NCBI GenBank assembly: GCA_900088475.1 | Contig: FLMG01001623.1 | Location: forward strand, 1 to 64,000 | Length of the DNA stretch: 64,000 nt | Source of the DNA: Hyphochytrium catenoides | Lineage: Eukaryota > Protista > Hyphochytriomycota | Direction: 5' to 3' | Part shown: positions 4,768 through 58,783 of the stretch, piece by piece | Layout of the letters: every line of letters begins with the position of its first letter | Numbering within the stretch: the stretch's first letter is position 1 | The notes under the pieces: model-generated | Databases searched by the model: none | Seen by the model: only the letters and a program-made list of their open reading frames with translations | Told to the model about the DNA's origin: nothing | Program-made: the position numbers and the translations under genes

Positions 4768-6350
4768 NNNNNNNNNNNNNNNNNNNNNTGGTCGCCGGAC
4801 ATCGGGCTGCCTCGATGCCCGCCTCACTAAAGAAGTTATTCGGTGGATCGTGCATGAGGCCGCTCGCGAAGCTGAGGTAAACAGCTACCAGGTCTTTACA
4901 TCGGCTGTGTCTCTGCTTCCGCAATGATAGTGCTGGATCCCCTGGGGTTAACTCTTCTTTATCTGTTCTAATGCTTGGCGGCGAGTCCCTTTCCCTTTCT
5001 TTCAAGTTTGAATCTCCTTACGTGACGCTCTTTGTCTATCCAACTCTCCCTTGCACATAGTTTCAAGGTCGGGCTCAGGATGCTCTTGAACTGTATCTCT
5101 GTGGTGGTGAGATTGTCGAAGTGGTCACTATACTTAGCGCTCAGCTTAGCATGGTGCTCGCACCTCCACACCCTGCTCGAGATTTATGGAAGAATGTAGC
5201 TTTCTCTTTCACATCTACGTACCTCTCTGCCCAGTTTGCCAGAGAGCTGGTAAGCTCTTCTTCCTTATTCTTCACCCTCTCTTCGGTTCGAGTGGATCCG
5301 CCCTCCGTCTTCCTTACGATTATACCTCTCTCTGCCTCTGCTCCTCCCTATCAGACTGGTCAAAGAGCTTGTTGCCTGCAGACTTGGCTCACACATTTCT
5401 ACACCTCCTCCTGGCAGCTCAATACCCGGCCGCAAGCGGGCCACACCTTTCAGCTTCTACTCAACTTGGCAGTATTCTTCGACCAGCTGCAGACAGGGCA
5501 GGTGGAGCAGGCGGTTGAGACTCTTGACAAACTGCAGATCGTACCGGCGACCACTGACCCCGGAGATCTTGCGTCAAAGGTCAGTGCTAAGCCATTCTTG
5601 ATTCTCATTATGTTCTTGATTCTCGTTCTAAACGCTCGGGTACATCTTCAAGTCGGCGAAGAGGCAGCGAGAGAGTGTGGGGAGAGACACAGTGTGTGTG
5701 TGTGCACGCGTGTGTGTATGAGAGGGGAGGGAGGAGAGGGGCAGGGAGTGAGAAAAAGAAGAAGAGATAGAGAAACACAGCCTCCAGGTTGTATACGTGG
5801 AGCTCGTAAACTTCCTTGGCTTGATATCCAACTTCTTAATCTGAGAATTATTCTTGAACTTCTCTCTCTTGCCTGACTTCCCATGCAATGCACCTATTCA
5901 CGCTTCTTCTCAACAGGAGGAGCAGTTTGACCTGCTGGACCCACTCGTGAGGAAGAGCTTTCATAGTATCCTGTTAGGTTACATGGATTGCCTCTACCGA
6001 GTGTATCAGAACTTGAAGAGAGGGAAGGCAGCTCGTGATGACGACAGGTGAAGCAGATCACTTTTCTAGGACCTGTATCGATTTCTTCCCATCGTTGGCG
6101 TATCGGCCTTGCTGCTGCCTCTCCGCAAAGACCGTTGTTCCCTGTCGCGTCGATTTGAACCTGGAGTCATAGCTTAAGCTTCTTCACCGTTCCTTCTGCA
6201 ATATGCTGCTCACGTTGTTATATCGTGTGCAGGCTCCGTGCGGTAAAGCTCCGAGCACAAGCTTTGGTGACGTTCGCTGGGCTGCTGAAGTATCGCCTGC
6301 CTGAGGATACAAACGCTCGCCTTACACGCTTGGAGGTTATGATGATGTAA
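2095..6350 (+). CDS. NUP93: Nuclear pore complex protein Nup93/Nic96 (multi-exon)
   Basis: Spliced exons approx. 2095-2247, 2323-2496, 2715-4429, about 4789-4876 (after an N gap), 5061-5249, 5418-5579, 5916-6047, 6233-6350. Motifs: KANFLLAGRGFD, SYEPLQPLGDT|DIEGYLRHHHEMIIVTAIDEAK, PLWPQVYYFLRCG, TMEDFMWEKL, EAVHFALAL, and C-terminal RAQALVTFAGLLKYRLPEDTNARLTRLEVMMM*. Confidence 0.92.
4722..4767. repeat. (CT)n microsatellite in a Nup93 intron, adjoining the N gap at 4768-4788
   Basis: Direct reading. Confidence 0.9.
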
Positions 6351-13400: not shown

Positions 13401-14463
13401 AGATATCGAAGAGAACAGCGGCCTTACTTCCTGCAAGAAGCCGAGTAGGCCCTCGAAGCTAAGATCCTCCTTGTCGAAGGAAGAAACCTCATCCTCTTCA
13501 TTCTTTCCTTTCCTCCCAAGTTTGTGAACCACAATGACACGAGGGAACTTGTCAACATTGAAGCGTTCAATCAGCCTGAATTGACACCCGACTATTGAGT
13601 CCGTGGGGTGTCACCGGTGAGAAAAGGACGGACGTACTCATTTTCTCCCTTCTCCACCTCTGCAAAGACCAAGCCGCGTCCAGACAAGCGAACTGAGAGC
13701 GCTTTGTACATCGGTGCCGTCGTCTTCCTAGAAGTAAAGAGGACAACCGTGGAGTTGCCGCTCTTTTCGTTACGTCGTACGAACGTCTCAAAATCTGCCT
13801 GTTCTCGGGGCAACCCGCTTAGCAGTGAACAACGGAGCTTGATGGCTTCACTTAACTCACCCCTGTAAGTCTTGTCACGGACGAAGGCATAGCTTTTCCA
13901 GCAAATGAGGTAAGGGCTCTGGCGGTCCGTGGCCCGTCATAGATGGCATGCTGAATGACATCTGGTCAGACCACCGCACCTTTCTAGTAGAGGGTACACT
14001 GCTTTCCTTACCTCGCGAAAGATTTTGTTGGTGTACGGATTTTTCTGAGGCTCTGCCGTAAATGCCTGAGGATCGAGAGCCACACTTTAGTGCAGAGTAT
14101 CCTGGCTCTGCGCTTTTCACCTACCAGGATTGTAGGATAGCCCTGAACATTAAAGTGCCTTGCTAGCTTCTCATTCTGCGGCAAAGTGGCATCGATTGCT
14201 GCAAAGTTGGCCAGGTTGTTCATCTCTGTCGCAGCTTTTTCGTATTCGGGAGCTAGCTGCTTGCAGTGTCCACACCACGGGGCGTAGAACTCGACGAGCC
14301 ACATCTCATTACTTTCCATCACTCGGCGATTAAAGTCTTTCTCGGTCAACATAATCACCTTGGAGTTATCATCCTCATAAAATGCAGATACGAAGCTTGC
14401 TGTGCCCGTGAGCAGTAGCAACACCGCCAACCAGCCCCGTGGCCATCTGGCCAGAGGGCCCAT
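10412..14463 (-). CDS. ER protein disulfide isomerase family protein: one WCGHC domain plus several thioredoxin-like domains, KEEL retention signal (multi-exon)
   Basis: Signal peptide MGPLARWPRGWLAVLLLLTGTASFVSA, then WLVEFYAPWCGHCKQLAPEYEKAA and VQGYPTI. Later exons show thioredoxin-fold patterns (TVVLFTSRKTTAPMYKALS, LIKVGAVNCERFVDLC, QFGIAKLPAILAMIP, LCVIGVLNG). Charged tail ends KAKDEKEEL*. Confidence 0.85.
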
Positions 14464-15051
14464 ACTTAGGCTAAAGTAATTAGTAGAGCTAGGGTCTAGG
14501 CGAAGCAGGCGGCGCTTTCTTGCGCTAGCTAAGCTTTTTGGCTGCCAGCCCAATTGTGGTTTGAAGGAGGCGGCTCCTTGGGCAGAGCTTCCGGACGCGT
14601 ATACAAAAAGCCTGTAGGGGATGCCACGTAAACTGATGTAGTGTGATGTGTGATCTGTATGATGATGTTTCGTGTACTCGTAGGACATTTGGTGAATCTT
14701 GTACGCTGTACATCTTGTACACTTGTACAGTAGGTTGTACGCCTTCTGCTTCAACTTGCCCATCTCCTTGTGTGGTAGAAGAACGATCTTCAGATCTCAA
14801 CTGTTTATTTGAACAGTAGTGACGGTGGTGGGCAGGATGAAGCGAGATTGCAAAGATGCAATCTCCTCAACACAGTTCCGTCGTCGCTGGAAACGCTCAC
14901 TGCATGGATGGTATGCCAGTCACTTCTTCATCACTAATTGGCCCTGATGCTATCAAGACGGCGCGGCAATGAGCGCGAGAGTGAAGGAAGGCAATGATGA
15001 CTGCCCTAAAGGTCTCTCTTGAGAATCTACCTTGTCCCATGCCAAAGATTT

Positions 15052-17246: not shown

Positions 17247-20200
17247 ATGCGAAGCTTTGGAGTAGCTTGGAAGGGACAGGGGCCCGCTAACTTGGCACCT
17301 AAAGCTGGGGATGTCTTCGGCTTTGTTACTTTCAGTGGACGGCAAGTATACGCTCCACTTGCAGCCTTTGGGACACAATCGCTTCAGTCACCACTTAAGG
17401 GGAGATTGGTGATAGTAGACCCACTGGAGGCTGAGGCGACCGTGAAAAACGCTGAGGATGTGAGTCATTTTCACTGAAGTGCCTCTTTATGTTGCTGAGA
17501 ACAGCGCTGCCCTCCAGGTCCGTGGAGCAGTTGCACTGGTCATGCGTGGTAGTTGCACATTTCCTGTTAAGGCCCGAAGGGTTCAGGAAGCTGGGGCTGT
17601 GGCTTTGATTGTCGCCAACAATGAGGCCGATAAGCCCGCAGAGGCGTTCAAGATGGGAGAGATTCAGCCTGGTGAGGCTGCTGACATACGCATACCGTGC
17701 GTCATGCTCTCTTATGAGAATGTTCAGGTTTACCCATCATCGATTGCGAAGTCCATGATACGATATTCTAACTAATTATCTGTAGGAGCTACTCGTGTGG
17801 GCACATTCTACAAACGACGCGAGTGTCTCCCTCGAGTTGTTACTTGGTCGCGAAGCCGCTGTGGCGTTTCAAAGGGAGAAAGAACGGAAAGGGCCCTCCA
17901 TGGTAAGCCATATCCCCTTCCTAGCGTTTGGCCAAAATGACCATCACCTAACAAAAACGGACAGAACATTGATCCTCCACCGTCGCTACTTGACAGCCAG
18001 CTCTTAAGTCACTTTTTTCAAAAGTCTGAACGACTCTTCAAGTTCCTCGAGACCCCTCCAGCACGTAGCCCAGAGGCACCTGCGACAACAGATGAATCCA
18101 GGCATAAAACTGTACAAACTTCAGACTCTTCGAAGACCTCTATTCTCTCACCATCCGGGGCTGGAAATGGCAACAAAGACGAGTCTCATGGGCAGGGTGA
18201 TGGTGCAATGAATGAACATACCACTGCTGCAGCCAGGCCGATGTATGCTTTTGCCCGATGGGCCACTGGCACTAGTGGATTCAACATGCATTACGCCCCT
18301 CTAGCAGATTTTGGTGCCCCTGATTCCTGTATTGTCATAAGCGGCANNNNNNNNNNNNACAATGACCAGCAGTGTCCTCAATCAGCGTTTGTTATGGGCG
18401 TTGATAATCTGCCGGTTGAGCATATCCGCATTCCATCGGCAAGTTTCACAACGCTAGCTAAATGGTCTTACACTACTCTCACACAATGTGCCTGTAGGTC
18501 ATGATCTCATATGAGGTCCATCAGAAGCTCCTTAAGAACTTTCCTTCATGCTTAAGCATTGTGGTTCTCCAGGGGGAGGCTGCAGGCGGCGTACTAGGTA
18601 TTGATGACGCGGAATGGGTCCTCCAGAAGCCAATGAAGCCTCCTAGAACGATGCCACCGCTTCATCGGTAGGTTATAAACCCTACTCTGACTGAAATAGA
18701 GAGCCTTAGTCTATTTACATCTAGGGCTTGCCTTCAGGGCCACGTAGAGTTCGTCGAGCAACTGTTAAAGGGTTCAGTAGAGGTCAATGAGCGGGATCTA
18801 AAGCGCTTCACACCTTTGCATTATGCTGTGATCTCTGGAACCGCGAACGTCGTCGATATGCTGCTTGGGAAGAAGGCAGATGTCAACGCTCAGGTACATA
18901 AACGAATCGCGAGGCCATAATGTTCCAAACTAATCATCTCCGCAGGATTTAGCGGGACAAACACCCCTACATCACGCTTGTAGGGAGGGTGACGAAAATA
19001 TAGTTGAGAAACTCCTTGGCCATATGGCTAGATTCAACGTGCCAGATGTGGGCAAGCAGACTCCACTTCACCTGGCCTGCTCTAACGGAAACACTGCGAT
19101 TGTGGAGCTCCTGATGGCAGCTAGTGCCACGGTAGGGCGCGAGGGAAAGTATGAGTTTCATGGCGTGGACCAGCTGGACGCGGACCAGTGTACCCCTCTA
19201 CATCGCGCGTGTGAGGTAATAAATGACGATTCTCAGAAGCTGCAAGAGATCGGTGGGCTGACGCTATGTACAGGCAGGTAATGCAGAGTCAGCCCTATAC
19301 CTCTTAGCGGCTGGAGCACGGTATGACCTTAAGGATAAGAACGGCAAGACAGCGCTGCATCACGTCTGTCAGGCTATTAACAAGCCGGGGAAGTCAAGTT
19401 CAGCGCTAGAAGTAATTGAGAGGCTAATTTCAATGGGCGCAACAATGGAGGAGCAAGAAGGTCAAAGCGCTGCCCTTGACCTAGTCCAAAACAAACAACT
19501 AAGAAGAGACCTAGAAATCGCTTATCTGCGTAAACAAGCGAACCTTCAGAGACAAGCCTTGGATGTCCTGAGGGAAGATAAGGACAATTTGCAGGTGTGC
19601 GCTATTGCATTCTTCCAATCAATTTTTTTGCAACGCTCTTACGCTGCTGGGATAAACGCAGAAACTGCTGGCAAACTATGTAAGTCAGCAGATTCAAACA
19701 CAATTCAGACTGCAAGCTTCAATGAAAGAGCGCGAGGACATGAAGATACAGTTGCAGTCTCAGAATGTACAGCTTCAGCAACTACAGCTGCAGATGAAGA
19801 CGACACTGCAGTTTCTCCAAAAACTAAATGCAACGGTGGAAAGTAAGTTAACTTATTGAAACGCTAACTCCGCATGAGCTAATGGGGTTGGTTCATCACG
19901 GACTTTAAACAGGCCAAGGTTTAGGTATAAGCGGAGGGTCGGGGTGTGCGCCGCCGACAAGCATTGCTGTTGAGGCGGTTCAGATTTCGGACAACCTCAT
20001 GGATGACGGGAGTCGGGCGGAGGAGTCCGCTCTAGCACGGGATATTGCCAAAAAGCACAGACGTAATAAGGGTAAGGAGACCTCGCTAACTTCAATTATT
20101 GAAGAGGTGTAGTTGACATACTATCCAGACTACCAGAACGCTGTACTATACTTCAGGAAGTCCTTGAGCATTATGCCCTTGCCCGGTGTCCAGAAACTAC

Positions 20201-21937
20201 TTGATAAGGCTGTGGCAGAGTTGAAGGAAGACCAGAAGCGCAAAGCTGCGGAGCGAGCAGCTAGGTACCAACATCGGTGATTTACTGCTGTTCAAGGGCA
20301 TTAGACCTTAAACACGTGTACTTTTAGTCGAAAGGCTGAGACAAAGGAGGGCTTAGTGCGGCGCTATAAGAATACACTGCTTCGCAGCGGGTGCCCTGCA
20401 TCAGCTCTAGAAGCTATTGAGGTAGTTTGAAGGATGGTCTGCACATCTAACTCTATCCGGTCCGATAAAGCTCATTCTTCCTGCAGGCGGAAATCTTGAA
20501 GCTCGATACGTTGGACGAAGGGTCCCAGGAGTACATTTTGGCTAGAGATTGGCTAGACTGGCTTGTAGCTATGCCTTGGGGCGGTGACGTCCTTGAGGCT
20601 GTAAATATAGAAACATTCACGAAGGTAATTTAACTTCCGGCCGAGATTGTTATGTACGCTCGTCGTCTCTTACACGGGTATTCAGCTCGAAGAAGCACAG
20701 AGGCTCGATGAACTCCAGAAGCATAACGGCTTGGCTCTACGGATACAGGTTCAGAAACCCACCAAATTGACACCATTGGCCAAGTCTAACAATTGCGCTG
20801 TCACTCAGTCCTGGTGGAAAAGAGCTAAAAGAGTCCGTGACCAGCAAAGATGGAAATGCGCATCCGGGGTCCAGGCCTTATGGAGAGGATATCGATTGCG
20901 ACAACATCTCCCGTCAATAAGGGAGAAACTTCTTTCGGAGAAAGAGGGGAACGGATCCAGCGATACGGGTAGAGAAGCACTGACTTTTCTGACAGGGCTT
21001 GTAGAGTCTGATCGGGAAGTTTTCCTTAGGATCAATGGGCTATAATGAGGATGAAGACGAGCTGCTCTTTGACGCTGAAAAGGTATTCAGGGAGATGACA
21101 GAAAAGAACCACCTCCTTTTCCCTCCCAGAGAGCAGCTCGCTGAAACTATTGCCGCCGATGTCGACCGCCTTATTCCACCTCGCCTCCGACACTGCAAAC
21201 TGATGGTGGGAGTGCTATTATGGCAGGTATTCGTTGTTCCCTGTATAATGTGAAGCATGTTTTGTTTGCTTGATCAACTCTTCCGTGATTGTGATCATCC
21301 AGTGAAGTAGTTATTGGGTTATGCTTATCTCGTAGTGCCTTCTTCGGTAATGCCATCTCTAGACTCATCTCATACCTACAACATTAAAGCAGTGATTACA
21401 CTTTTCTAAATGGCTTGCTTTATGGTCTCACTTTTAGACTCCTGTCCTGTCCGATTTGGGCGCGGAAGAAAAGGAGCGTTTCCACATTCTTCAAGTGATT
21501 GATGCCAGCTCAGCAACGTTACCTGTTGAACTCGATAGCCAGCCAGCCGACAATCAGGGATATTATTGCTGGAACAGGTTGGAATACCCTCTTTTTGCTA
21601 CCACTGTCCCCTCATCTTCTTGAGGGCTACTGCCCTTTCTTCAACCTTAACGCGTTTCTAAGGAGCGTTTAGTGTATACTGATCGGCCTTCATTATCAGA
21701 TGGGGAGTCATTGGCACCAGGGGCCAGATGTCTATCAAGGGCCCTTACAATTTGGAAGGAGCTATGCGAGAGTTCAAGAAGCGATATTTTGAGAAGACCC
21801 TCAATCAATGGGGAACAGCTAGGGAAGAGTTCGTTCTTAGCTCACACCACTTTAAGCCAATCCTGTTCCCTATCCATGGAACCAAGTCTATCAGTGCGGA
21901 CGACAGAGAAAGAGCTCCACTGGCGGCGGCTTCTTAG
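17247..21937 (+). CDS. Multidomain protein: 2x PA domain, ankyrin repeats, coiled coil, TPR-like helix pair, Lon-type helical bundle, 2x IQ, C-terminal WGR domain
   Basis: About 17 exons joined in consistent phase. PA1: GAVALVMRGSCTFPVKARRVQEAGAVALIVANN...IRIPCVMLS. PA2 is broken by an N gap but ends IRIPS|VMISYE. Ankyrin: TPLHYAV, TPLHHAC, TPLHLAC, TPLHRAC, TALHHVC. IQ: IQ|SWWKR and VQALWRGYRLRQ. WGR: RFHILQVID...YYCWNR|WGVIGTRGQMSIKGPYNLEGAMREFKKRYFEKTLNQW. Stop TAG at 21935-21937. Confidence 0.8.
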
Positions 21938-22301: not shown

Positions 22302-23009
22302 CTACTCGTGATCTCCATCATGCCCGTGCCCGTGGCACTTGGGAACAATGCAGCCACTAGTAGACATGCAGTCTCTACGATGAAGAGCCACCAGCGTCTG
22401 CCAAAAATGGCAGGCTCTGCACGGTGACTCACCACTAGGAAGGCATTTATGCTGCTTCACCTTCTCAACTAAACGTCTTGTCGAGCGGCAGAGCATCCTG
22501 TCGCAGCCATCGCATGTAGAGATGTGGTGCAGGCCTTTGCGGACCGACTGGACCTTCAAAACCAGTTCTCGAAGCTTTCTATTGCTATCGCAGCGCTGTT
22601 CGAAGGCCTCCAATGTCTGAAAGGCCTTGCTCCGGACGACAACATCCTCTCCCACGTCGCCGCCTCCAACAGCAGGTCGACGGCTGATAGACGAATGGCT
22701 TAAAAGCTGGAAAATGTTGCGCCTCGTACCGACTTCTGAGGGTTTTTTGGGACGCAAGCTGATGACGCCTGGCCTTTTCCTAGCAATTCTAACCTTTCGT
22801 GGTGAATTTTGAGAGGGTACCAGGGCCAAGGGCACGCTTCGCATGACATCCGCTCCGAGATGCGGGAAAGTTGTTGGCAGCTCCTGCTGTAGAGGTGGTG
22901 CCATGCTCTCGGTCCCTGGCTCCAATATCATGGGAATAGCTACAACAACGTCATCTTGCTTCAAGAAGGGAAGCGCTTCGCCAATGGTGTTGTGCTTGAC
23001 AGTCTGCAT
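22302..23009 (-). CDS. Small stand-alone TAZ-type zinc finger protein
   Basis: Single 235-aa ORF. C-terminal LHHISTCDGCDRMLC...QHKC...PCRAC...LVALHRRDCMSTSGCIVPKC follows the TAZ H-x3-C-xn-C-xn-C triplet pattern. Confidence 0.7.
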   Translation of the reverse strand: MQTVKHNTIGEALPFLKQDDVVVAIPMILEPGTESMAPPLQQELPTTFPHLGADVMRSVPLALVPSQNSPRKVRIARKRPGVISLRPKKPSEVGTRRNIFQLLSHSSISRRPAVGGGDVGEDVVVRSKAFQTLEAFEQRCDSNRKLRELVLKVQSVRKGLHHISTCDGCDRMLCRSTRRLVEKVKQHKCLPSGESPCRACHFWQTLVALHRRDCMSTSGCIVPKCHGHGHDGDHE

Positions 23010-54058: not shown

Positions 54059-56461
54059 CTTGGCGGTCTCAATGACCCTAAGCGTTGTGGCGTCTCCAAT
54101 GAAGAAAGTAGCTAGAAATGGATGAGCTTTTAAAAAAAATTGAGCTAACCAATCATTAGCCTCTACAATGGTGAGCTGAACACCATGATGCCTGGTAAGA
54201 AGACACTGCCTAATCCTCAGAGTTTGCAGAACGTCAGGCAAAGGCTCAGAGATCGAAGTAAAGGAAGAAAGTGATACTAATGCAGACAGATAGCAGCCCA
54301 AACGGAGACCGCGTATATGTTATGCACACAATTGAACGAGAGTTTTTTCCAAGCAGCAGAAAAGTGTTTGAGAGGTACGAAAGGTTGATAGCAATGTGTC
54401 CTGAAGCTCAATGCGCCAGGGATGGTTGCCGCCGAGATAGTTGCTACCGCAGTGCTGAGATGATACCAATGATGGTTTTTATGTAAGGAAACTGTGTAAC
54501 ATGTCTGTACTTAGAAAACCCTTCCAGCGCAGCTGCAGTGTGCTCAGGCTAGAAGCGGTAGTGGCGATAGAGAGGGTATTGATAGGCAAATAATAAGCAG
54601 CCCTCGTAACATCCAAAGTGGAGCGCAACAGACCTGCTCCTTCTTCCTCCTATGGTTCTATCGCGCGTCTCATGATGATATGTCGACGGAAGACGGCTTT
54701 GTTGGTAAGACAAGCATTTCCTAGTAGCAAAAGTTAACAGGAGAGAAAGGGGAGGAGGAGTATCTTCTCAGCATCTAAAAGTTCTCGAGGTAGCAGCAGG
54801 GTCATCGTTCTATCGTGGTGAAGTTCCCTTTCATATCTTCCCGTTCATCCCAGGTCGTTCTACCCTCTAAAAACATAACAGAGCCCTAAACAGCTCTTCC
54901 AGTGAGACAGGCGCACCAGCACATCTGAGACACCTGGGATTTTGGGTCAGGACCGAGGTCGAGGGAGGCTCAACCTCGTGCTCAAGGATGCCACAAAAGC
55001 GAAGGTTTGGTCAAGGCAAGGGGCAAATGAAGAACAACAGAATCAAAGAGCCTGTCGACAAACTGACATTCTTCTGGGCTTCACTTCCTTTTCCCCTATC
55101 GCAGCTTGTGAATCAGGGCGGACGGGCCATTCGGTTCTGGTGCACCAGCATTAGTTGGAGCTAAAACGGTAGTGCTGAGCTCCTCATTATTTAGTTGGGT
55201 TGAACAGCCCTAAGAACGTGCCCCTGAAGCCTAACAACGCCTTGCTACTCTACGTCAGCTTTCTAAAGAATGACAAAATTTATTATAGGAGGTGTTTTCA
55301 CAAGGGAAGACGATGGCAAAGGACTGAGACGGGTGGGAGCTTGAGAACAGAGAAATCATCAGGCCTGANNNNNNNNNNNNNNNNNNNNNNNNNNNNNNNN
55401 NNNNNNNNNNNNNNNNNNNNNNNNNNNNNNCTCCTCTTTTCCTTTTCGTTTCATGGTCAATCCTAGCTTGTACCTTTGGTCTCCCATACCTCTGCAAATA
55501 ATAAGTCTACTCTACCTTCTTCTAGTACTCACTATCTCTCCTCTGCTATGTTGAACTTTCGAACGACCTACTACGTGCAGCTTCACGATGTGTCTGAGCA
55601 GCTGTCTGAGGTTCAGGAGACCACATCTCAGGGCAGCACAAGCTCGGTTTTCATAAATCATAGAAGGAGGAACGGTGGGTTTGGTATGGGCGGCCGCTTC
55701 GAGAAAGAACGATGTGGTGCTGCCCCACCAGCAAGTGATAGCGCTTCTCTTCGATCGTGCCTCCCGGTGAGCCCCATCATGCTCTCCCGAAGGGATGTCC
55801 TACTAGAACATGTCTAGGTAGCGGGTAAACAACTACTAGGTGGGAGAACCTGGGTTTTGTCGAGGTTCTGGTAAGAAAAATCTTTTCTTCTAGGCAGCTC
55901 TGGGCAACATCACCGTAGGCTGCGAGGACGAGATGAGGACAGGGTGCACTGCTGATGGTGAACAAGGGGCCCCGCTACTACGAAAGGAAGTAGTCTTGAT
56001 TTTGGGGCAATTAGGTTTCCGGTGCAGAGAATCCCCAGCTCTCAGATCAACCGAGCAAATCAAAGAAACAGACCGACCATGGGAGATGTTGGCATAGCTA
56101 CTAAGAAGTAGAACTATATGGATAGAGACGTCTCTTAACGTAATCTTGGCAGCCCTGCAGCAGGAATGGGGATATTGAGGGCACATGCCCCCCAAATATT
56201 GCCTGAGCTGTCGAGCCCAGATGCGACAATCTGCTGATCAGCTGAACTGCAACGAAGGCGTGCATTCACTACTTTACGAACTATTGGGCATTAACTCTGC
56301 CCTTTCTCCTGATAATACTAAGGTTGCATTCGTTAATCTTCAACACATAGAAGATGATTATATCCCTTCAGCTCCCCAGGGTACTATGACAACCTTTGCT
56401 TTGTACTACTTTGTACTATAAGAACTACTCGGGGTACTCATCAGCTCCACGTCGCTGACAG

Positions 56462-58479: not shown

Positions 58480-58783
58480 CCAAGTCTATAAGAAGGTTCA
58501 CTGTGTCCTGAAAGGCAAGCAAGAGTCTACTGAAGAGAGCCAAACTGGCCAGTCGCGCAAGGCTGGGTCTAGAGTTTGGAGAGCCATATAGATGTCCAGG
58601 GCCTAGAAAGTGGCAACAAGCTGGCAGGAGGGCAAACGAAAGAAAGGTTACGATCAAAGATACGGAGCAGCACACAGCTCGGAAGGAAGAAAAGCGTTTG
58701 AGACAGAGTGAGCAAGTAGGGGAGGGAAAAGGGAAGGNNNNNNNNNNNNNNNNNNNNNNNNNNNNNNNNNNNNNNNNNNNNNN

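Follow-up and report, generated by a model that had tools for sequence, protein, structure and literature searches.

What is a piece of the Lon protease doing in a protein that has no protease? This question is raised by a gene on a 64,000-nucleotide stretch of DNA from the hyphochytrid Hyphochytrium catenoides (contig FLMG01001623.1, positions 1 to 64,000 of the forward strand), which we analysed and which is termed "the window" in the following. In a first-pass annotation of the window two short peptides of this gene had been ascribed to the segment of Lon located just before the AAA+ domain, and it had been proposed that a Lon fragment was co-opted as an interaction module, possibly as a decoy or regulator of Lon. 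In Lon this segment is a three-helix bundle, referred to as 3H, as NTD3H, or as helices α8-α10 of the HI(CC) domain (PMC8519571, PMC6722904, PMC7239648). It comes after a long helix (PMC8519571) and forms a rigid extension of the ATPase, with Y294 and W297 (numbering of Y. pestis Lon) docking Y456 of the ATPase hairpin and with M284 lining the entry pore (PMC7239648).

Results

Organisation of the gene

The stretch is eukaryotic and intron-rich, and the gene is located on its plus strand. Its domains follow each other in the order PA, PA, ankyrin, coiled coil, bundle, IQ and WGR, giving a protein of about 1000 residues. The first PA domain (17349..17772) is recognised by Pfam (PF02225, E 1.2e-16) and is collinear with P0010, a homologue from Phytophthora infestans described below. 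The second, PA-like domain (18103..18504) was located by tblastn with residues 114-186 of P0010. It is broken by a 12-N assembly gap (18347-18358), which makes it unreadable in full, and Pfam was silent on both halves flanking this gap. Further runs of N are found in the window at 4768-4788, 55369-55430 and 58738-58783. Ankyrin repeats (18708..19450; Pfam Ank/Ank_2, with E-values down to 1e-22) and a coiled-coil-like, Gln-rich helical region containing the motifs LRRDLEI.YLR and QLQLQM (19500..19843) come next, both being collinear with the homologue L010 and with P0009 and P0010, two of the Phytophthora proteins.

The exon at 20129..20264 starts with a TPR-like helix and continues with a charged, coiled-coil-like helix that runs into the bundle; Pfam detected no TPR in 19909-20262, and the label is to be read as TPR-like only. 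This exon matches the following one, exon A, in frame and splice phase and, like L010 and the Phytophthora proteins, with which it is collinear, contains the motif PLPGVQ/H/N. Exon A (20328..20421) encodes helix I and the beginning of helix II of a Lon-type three-helix bundle, its first base completing a Ser codon opened by the 'ag' at 20263-20264. Exon B (20487..20624) comprises 46 codons, is in phase 0 at both ends and encodes the end of helix II, a turn, helix III with W-L-D-W-L...P-W-G, and the start of a linker. The linker helices and the IQ motifs reside in exon C (20686..20968). The best of these motifs, at 20854-20910, reaches 21.2 bits in Pfam (PF00612, E 2.2e-4), above the gathering cut-off of 20.3, and is predicted to bind calmodulin. 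The C-terminal end of the gene is an exon encoding a WGR domain (21683..21934; PF05406, E 4e-10), which scores 40.1 bits against a cut-off of 22 and covers positions 31-77 of the 79 in the profile.

Four consecutive GT-AG introns of 57-65 nt separate these exons around the bundle: 20072-20128, 20265..20327 (63 nt), 20422..20486 (65 nt, phase 0) and 20625..20685 (61 nt, phase 0). The two peptides originally reported, at 20341-20421 and 20487-20582, proved exact on translation, the true exon limits being slightly wider. We thus confirmed 20328-20421 and 20487-20624 as two in-frame coding exons, their predicted splicing being based on phase, splice sites and homologues.

Two open reading frames on the minus strand flank the gene. 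The one upstream (14008-14763) carries a thioredoxin/PDI-type W-C-G-H-C motif, and the other (22302-23009, 235 aa) converges on the 3' end of the gene and has a terminal Cys/His-rich stretch.

Sequence similarity to Lon

The exons were searched singly, and the uninterrupted homologues L010 and P0007-P0011 were used in place of the spliced window protein. A phmmer search of all PDB sequences with exon B alone returned 35 rows, almost all of which are Lon. The best matches were chains of mitochondrial LONP1 (E 3.2e-4), aligned at LONP1 441-472, and the non-Lon rows were a designed repeat protein without a single significant stretch and two antibodies with E >0.6. Among the NCBIfam models exon B matched TIGR00763 'lon', which represents full-length Lon, at positions 278-319 of 795 with an E-value of 2.4e-5. 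The Lon profile match anticipated in the first-pass annotation is thus significant for exon B; exon A alone gave no Lon match. Exon A is assigned to the bundle because it is collinear with the homologues without a gap, being 37% identical to residues 25-51 of ORF2 of L010. When this uninterrupted homologue was compared with TIGR00763 (L010:1247-1600), the match extended over positions 249-322 with an E-value of 3.4e-11 and included the residues equivalent to exon A.

Searching the PDB with a profile of seven family members, none of which is a Lon (alignment A5), we obtained 32 Lon sequences and no other significant match, the best being human LONP1 413-476 (E 5.5e-9). The pieces from Phytophthora, each compared separately with TIGR00763, aligned at positions ~250-311 with E-values from 9e-5 to 0.03. 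The alignment of the segment to Lon is free of gaps over about 60 residues, and across the family the Lon profile matches stop at TIGR00763 position 310-322, indicating that the homology ends a few residues past P-W-G. Pfam gave no match on the segment, and it holds no model for that part of Lon. These results show that exons A and B code for a genuine homologue of the N-terminal three-helix bundle of LonA (NTD3H), comprising about 65 residues, and the assignment of the peptides to the part of Lon just before AAA+ was correct.

Exon C alone gave no Lon match. An equivalence of its KHNGL with DHYGL of Lon was considered and rejected, as the profile matches have ended by position 310-322 of TIGR00763.

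Predicted fold of the bundle

A first AF2 model had been calculated from an alignment with Lon rows and was therefore partly circular; it was remade without them from two family rows, and both models agree. The Lon-free model consists of three helices with a pLDDT of 83-91 across the helices. In a Foldseek search of the PDB with this model the top 50 matches were all Lon, with a probability of 1.00, and superposed with an rmsd of 0.7-2.2 Å (mostly 0.7-1.5) over 49-58 columns and a TM-score by query of 0.62-0.74. The corresponding E-values were just 3e-3 to 1e-1, a range to be expected when about 55 residues are compared. Both models are predictions, and since AF2 was trained on Lon structures this comparison of folds is not fully independent of them. 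Of the ten rows given by a search of the ESM Atlas by shape, nine were clusters of Lon or of Lon fragments and one was an unnamed AAA-bearing cluster. The ESM Atlas search by features found nothing, and a metagenome scan retrieved bacterial Lon (L011) only.

Homologues and conservation

In a HMMER search of 1.84 billion proteins exon B had six matches, namely four Lon fragments, one spurious repeat protein, and P0006, a non-Lon protein in which the bundle is followed by IQ-like motifs. P0006 is encoded on L010, a 2.3-kb intronless, transcript-like contig assembled from a public sequencing run, on which ankyrin repeats and a coiled coil are followed by a PLPGVQ motif, the bundle, IQ-like motifs and a WGR-like tail. 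Between the coiled coil and the bundle the reading frame of L010 shifts at an A7 run (L010:1241-1250), so that two ORFs of 438 and 292 aa are called; this shift is probably an error of assembly or sequencing. L010 is collinear with 18708-20609 of the window, from the ankyrin repeats to the bundle. The junction of exons A and B corresponds to a contiguous, gap-free stretch in the intronless L010, supporting the predicted splicing. Identity to L010 amounts to 37-40% in the bundle segment as compared to 33-42% in the ankyrin and coil parts.

When ORF2 of L010 was used as the seed of a word search, only itself was retrieved; with the non-ankyrin part of L010 as the seed, the search led to a protein of Phytophthora pseudosyringae. 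From there, relatives were reached in P. cactorum, P. palmivora (P0009), P. infestans (PITG_20558, P0010) and P. sojae. All five Phytophthora proteins contain the bundle, in the form C-R-W-V-E-W...L-P-W-G, and P0010 and P0009 map collinearly onto the window in tblastn, beginning with the first PA domain (17349) and extending as far as the bundle. These hypothetical proteins (PITG_20558, PHYPSEUDO_002599, PHYSODRAFT_375398 and relatives), annotated as PA domain- or ankyrin repeat-containing, are orthologues of the window gene and have the collinear order PA, PA, ankyrin, coiled coil, helical motif, bundle, IQ and WGR-like tail in common with it. Thus, the gene represents a conserved pseudofungal family and not an oddity of one genome, and retention of the bundle in orthologues, which the first-pass annotation had asked about, is seen in L010 and the five Phytophthora proteins. 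The papers searched make no mention of PITG_20558.

The tails of L010 and P0009 are 30% identical (E 1e-34). Neither the IQ-containing nor the WGR-containing exon of the window could be aligned by BLASTP with the tail of L010 or P0009. In P0009:740-800 and at residues ~265-310 of L010 ORF2 the tails exhibit a WGR-like pattern, W-x-R-W-G/W...G-P-Y-E, that escapes detection by Pfam at E 0.01; the WGR of the Phytophthora tails is thus below Pfam detection, unlike that of the window.

Seven columns of the family alignment are invariant (E, K, L, E, W, P, W), and each of them is at a signature position of Lon. At the position of Y294 all seven rows have a Trp, at the position of W297 six of the seven do, and P-W is invariant; in the window and L010 both positions are occupied by Trp. 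The pore residue M284 of Lon reads as Gly in the alignment in both the window and L010. The bundles of Phytophthora are more diverged than that of the window, with C-R-W-V-E-W instead of A-R-D-W-L-D-W, and have lower Lon scores.

ATPase and protease domains, and the Lon genes of the genome

A Walker A motif (G-x4-G-K-S/T) is absent from every frame between 15 and 25 kb, and none of the plus-strand reading frames downstream of the bundle matched AAA (PF00004), Lon_lid or Lon_C. Likewise, neither Walker A nor AAA+ is present in the uninterrupted Phytophthora and L010 proteins. On the other side of the bundle, no exon-sized frame of the gene matched PF02190, the N-terminal substrate-binding domain of Lon, and the TIGR00763 matches never begin before position ~249. 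The earlier observation that the bundle is followed by IQ motifs, and not by Walker A or the Lon protease domain, therefore holds, and from the absence of these domains the protein carrying the bundle is predicted to have neither ATPase nor protease function. The PA domains do not alter this picture. Domains of this type are common in non-proteases and do not indicate a protease-related function; the suggestion that the protein combines two kinds of protease accessory module goes back to a coincidence of names.

Genome-wide, Lon_C (PF05362) was found on contigs C121 and C3031 only. Each of these contigs harbours an ordinary Lon gene in which Walker A and the motif of the catalytic Ser are present (C3031:130000-139999, L009, and C121:39000-48500, L008). 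One of the encoded proteins is of the mitochondrial LONP1 type (NYLDWLTQLPW); the other one reads TYLEWISDLPW and may be peroxisomal. When the family profile was run against the genome of the window, it matched exon B and the mitochondrial-type Lon exon, and nothing else.

Age and origin of the bundle

As Phytophthora has the same protein, the borrowing of the bundle predates the split between oomycetes and hyphochytrids. The family appears to date at least to the common ancestor of both groups, the bundle having been kept since.

With every query the mitochondrial type of Lon scored best. Piecewise ungapped comparison of the window with the two Lon proteins of its own genome gave 16 identities in 42 positions for the mitochondrial type and 10 in 44 for the other one. 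The likeliest source, judged by these similarities, is a partial copy of a LONP1-type gene, about 65 residues being too few to prove the origin or to give a reliable tree. The introns in the bundle regions of the two Lon genes differ from each other and from those of the window gene, no intron being shared with either of them, with one intron boundary of the mitochondrial-type gene not exactly fixed. Thus, no trace of the copying event is left in the intron positions.

Discussion

What, then, does the bundle contribute to a protein without a motor? We consider it likely that the gene encodes a conserved, detached Lon bundle that arose as a partial copy of a LONP1-type gene and was fused into a scaffold protein, in which it serves as a rigid adaptor. 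An ancestral partial copy of Lon, closest to the mitochondrial LONP1 type, would have been joined to the scaffold, and its product would be a small, autonomously folding and rigid module. In the window gene the bundle is preceded by a charged helix, and an IQ-bearing helix follows where Lon has its ATPase, so that the bundle may cap a helical stalk as it does after the long helix of Lon. The conserved aromatic surface, made up of the Trp residues at the positions of Y294 and W297 and of P-W, would then face a new docking partner, which most likely is located in the same chain, where the candidates are the conserved linker and the IQ helix, a predicted calmodulin binder that takes the place of AAA+.

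Alternatively, the partner might be a Lon or another machine of the HCLR clade. The orphan bundle could bind the AAA+ ring of such a machine in trans, using the pocket in which the hairpin is docked in cis, and could thereby either modulate the machine or recruit it to clients of the PA and ankyrin domains. The preservation of both aromatic positions that contact Y456 in Lon (Trp in seven of seven and in six of seven rows) would fit such a decoy or regulator, as would the two intact Lon genes of the genome. However, in Lon each protomer already holds a bundle of its own, docked rigidly in cis, so that no obvious free site is available. Moreover, the pore residue M284 is replaced by Gly in the window and L010, and the aromatic residues may have been kept merely for the packing of the bundle itself. 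No evidence for a mitochondrial location was found, and ankyrin repeats, IQ motifs and WGR domains are typical of cytosolic or nuclear proteins. The role as decoy or regulator put forward in the first-pass annotation thus gained no support, and we regard it as very unlikely. Slightly less likely still is a more specific version, in which the bundle keeps its aromatic pocket to dock an AAA+ hairpin in trans and acts as an adaptor that is controlled by calmodulin via the IQ motifs, bringing PA or ankyrin clients to Lon or another HCLR-clade unfoldase. If this docking in trans were true, eukaryotes would possess an AAA+ adaptor that has been made from part of the very machine it serves.

Two further readings deny the bundle a role or its ancestry. 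The Lon-like stretch might be a relic, decaying or optional, that is spliced out or contributes nothing, and indeed the published gene set apparently lacks the exons, given that the library of 1.84 billion proteins contained no self-match. This explanation is at odds with the open frames and with phases that are consistent across four consecutive GT-AG introns; in addition, identity to L010 is similar in the segment and in the flanking domains (37-40% versus 33-42%), five Phytophthora proteins contain the segment, and its family-invariant positions are Lon signature residues. Its probability is accordingly lower than that of binding in trans. The lowest probability of all, close to none, is that of a chance or convergent helical motif without common descent from Lon. 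In its favour are the shortness of the segment, the absence of a Pfam model and the lack of matches for exon A alone; against it, three independent queries find Lon alone and at the same place (E 2.4e-5, 3.4e-11 and 5.5e-9), the alignment to Lon extends over about 60 residues without a gap, and the predicted model superposes at about 1 Å.

The conserved, detached bundle can be compared directly with the NTD3H of LonA proteases (MEROPS S16; residues 253-305 in E. coli and Y. pestis Lon, ~413-476 in human LONP1), which corresponds to α8-α10 of E. coli Lon and makes up the C-terminal part of HI(CC). Both have the signature E-x2-K-L, S-x-E, aromatic-L-D/E-W-L and P-W, a topology of three helices, and a place right after a long charged helix. 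In contrast to LonA, the bundle of the window has no AAA+ or protease after it and no Lon N domain or conserved long-helix motif before it, has Gly in place of M284 and Trp in place of Y294, and is succeeded by IQ motifs where LonA has its ATPase. The solved structures of Lon treat the bundle as a rigid, inseparable extension of the ATPase, whereas here it is detached and has been kept without the motor across the split between oomycetes and hyphochytrids. Nature thus provides an experiment in which one can ask whether the bundle folds and functions on its own, and to what its invariant aromatic surface binds in the absence of the ATPase hairpin. In addition, a domain missing from the annotation can now be assigned to a protein family that is conserved, but uncharacterised, in the plant pathogens of the genus Phytophthora. 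The value of the finding lies in this domain annotation and in a modest case of structural evolution; by itself it opens no long-standing question.

The reuse of Lon pieces in non-proteases is already known. LONRF1-3 and cereblon are eukaryotic non-proteases with a Lon N-terminal (PF02190) domain and set a precedent for a piece of Lon being kept as a binding or structural module without ATPase or protease. The piece that is reused differs, however: LONRF1-3 and cereblon contain the β-rich N domain and lack the three-helix bundle, whereas the reverse is true for the window gene, in which PF02190 is missing.

Row 9 of the ESM Atlas shape search is a bacterial cluster of 69 members with proteins of ~306 aa, Acidobacteriota being the commonest source. 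These proteins have PF02190 as their only domain and align to the bundle at 1.7 Å; they could be natural proteins that consist of the Lon N-terminal part only, including the bundle, or truncated gene calls.
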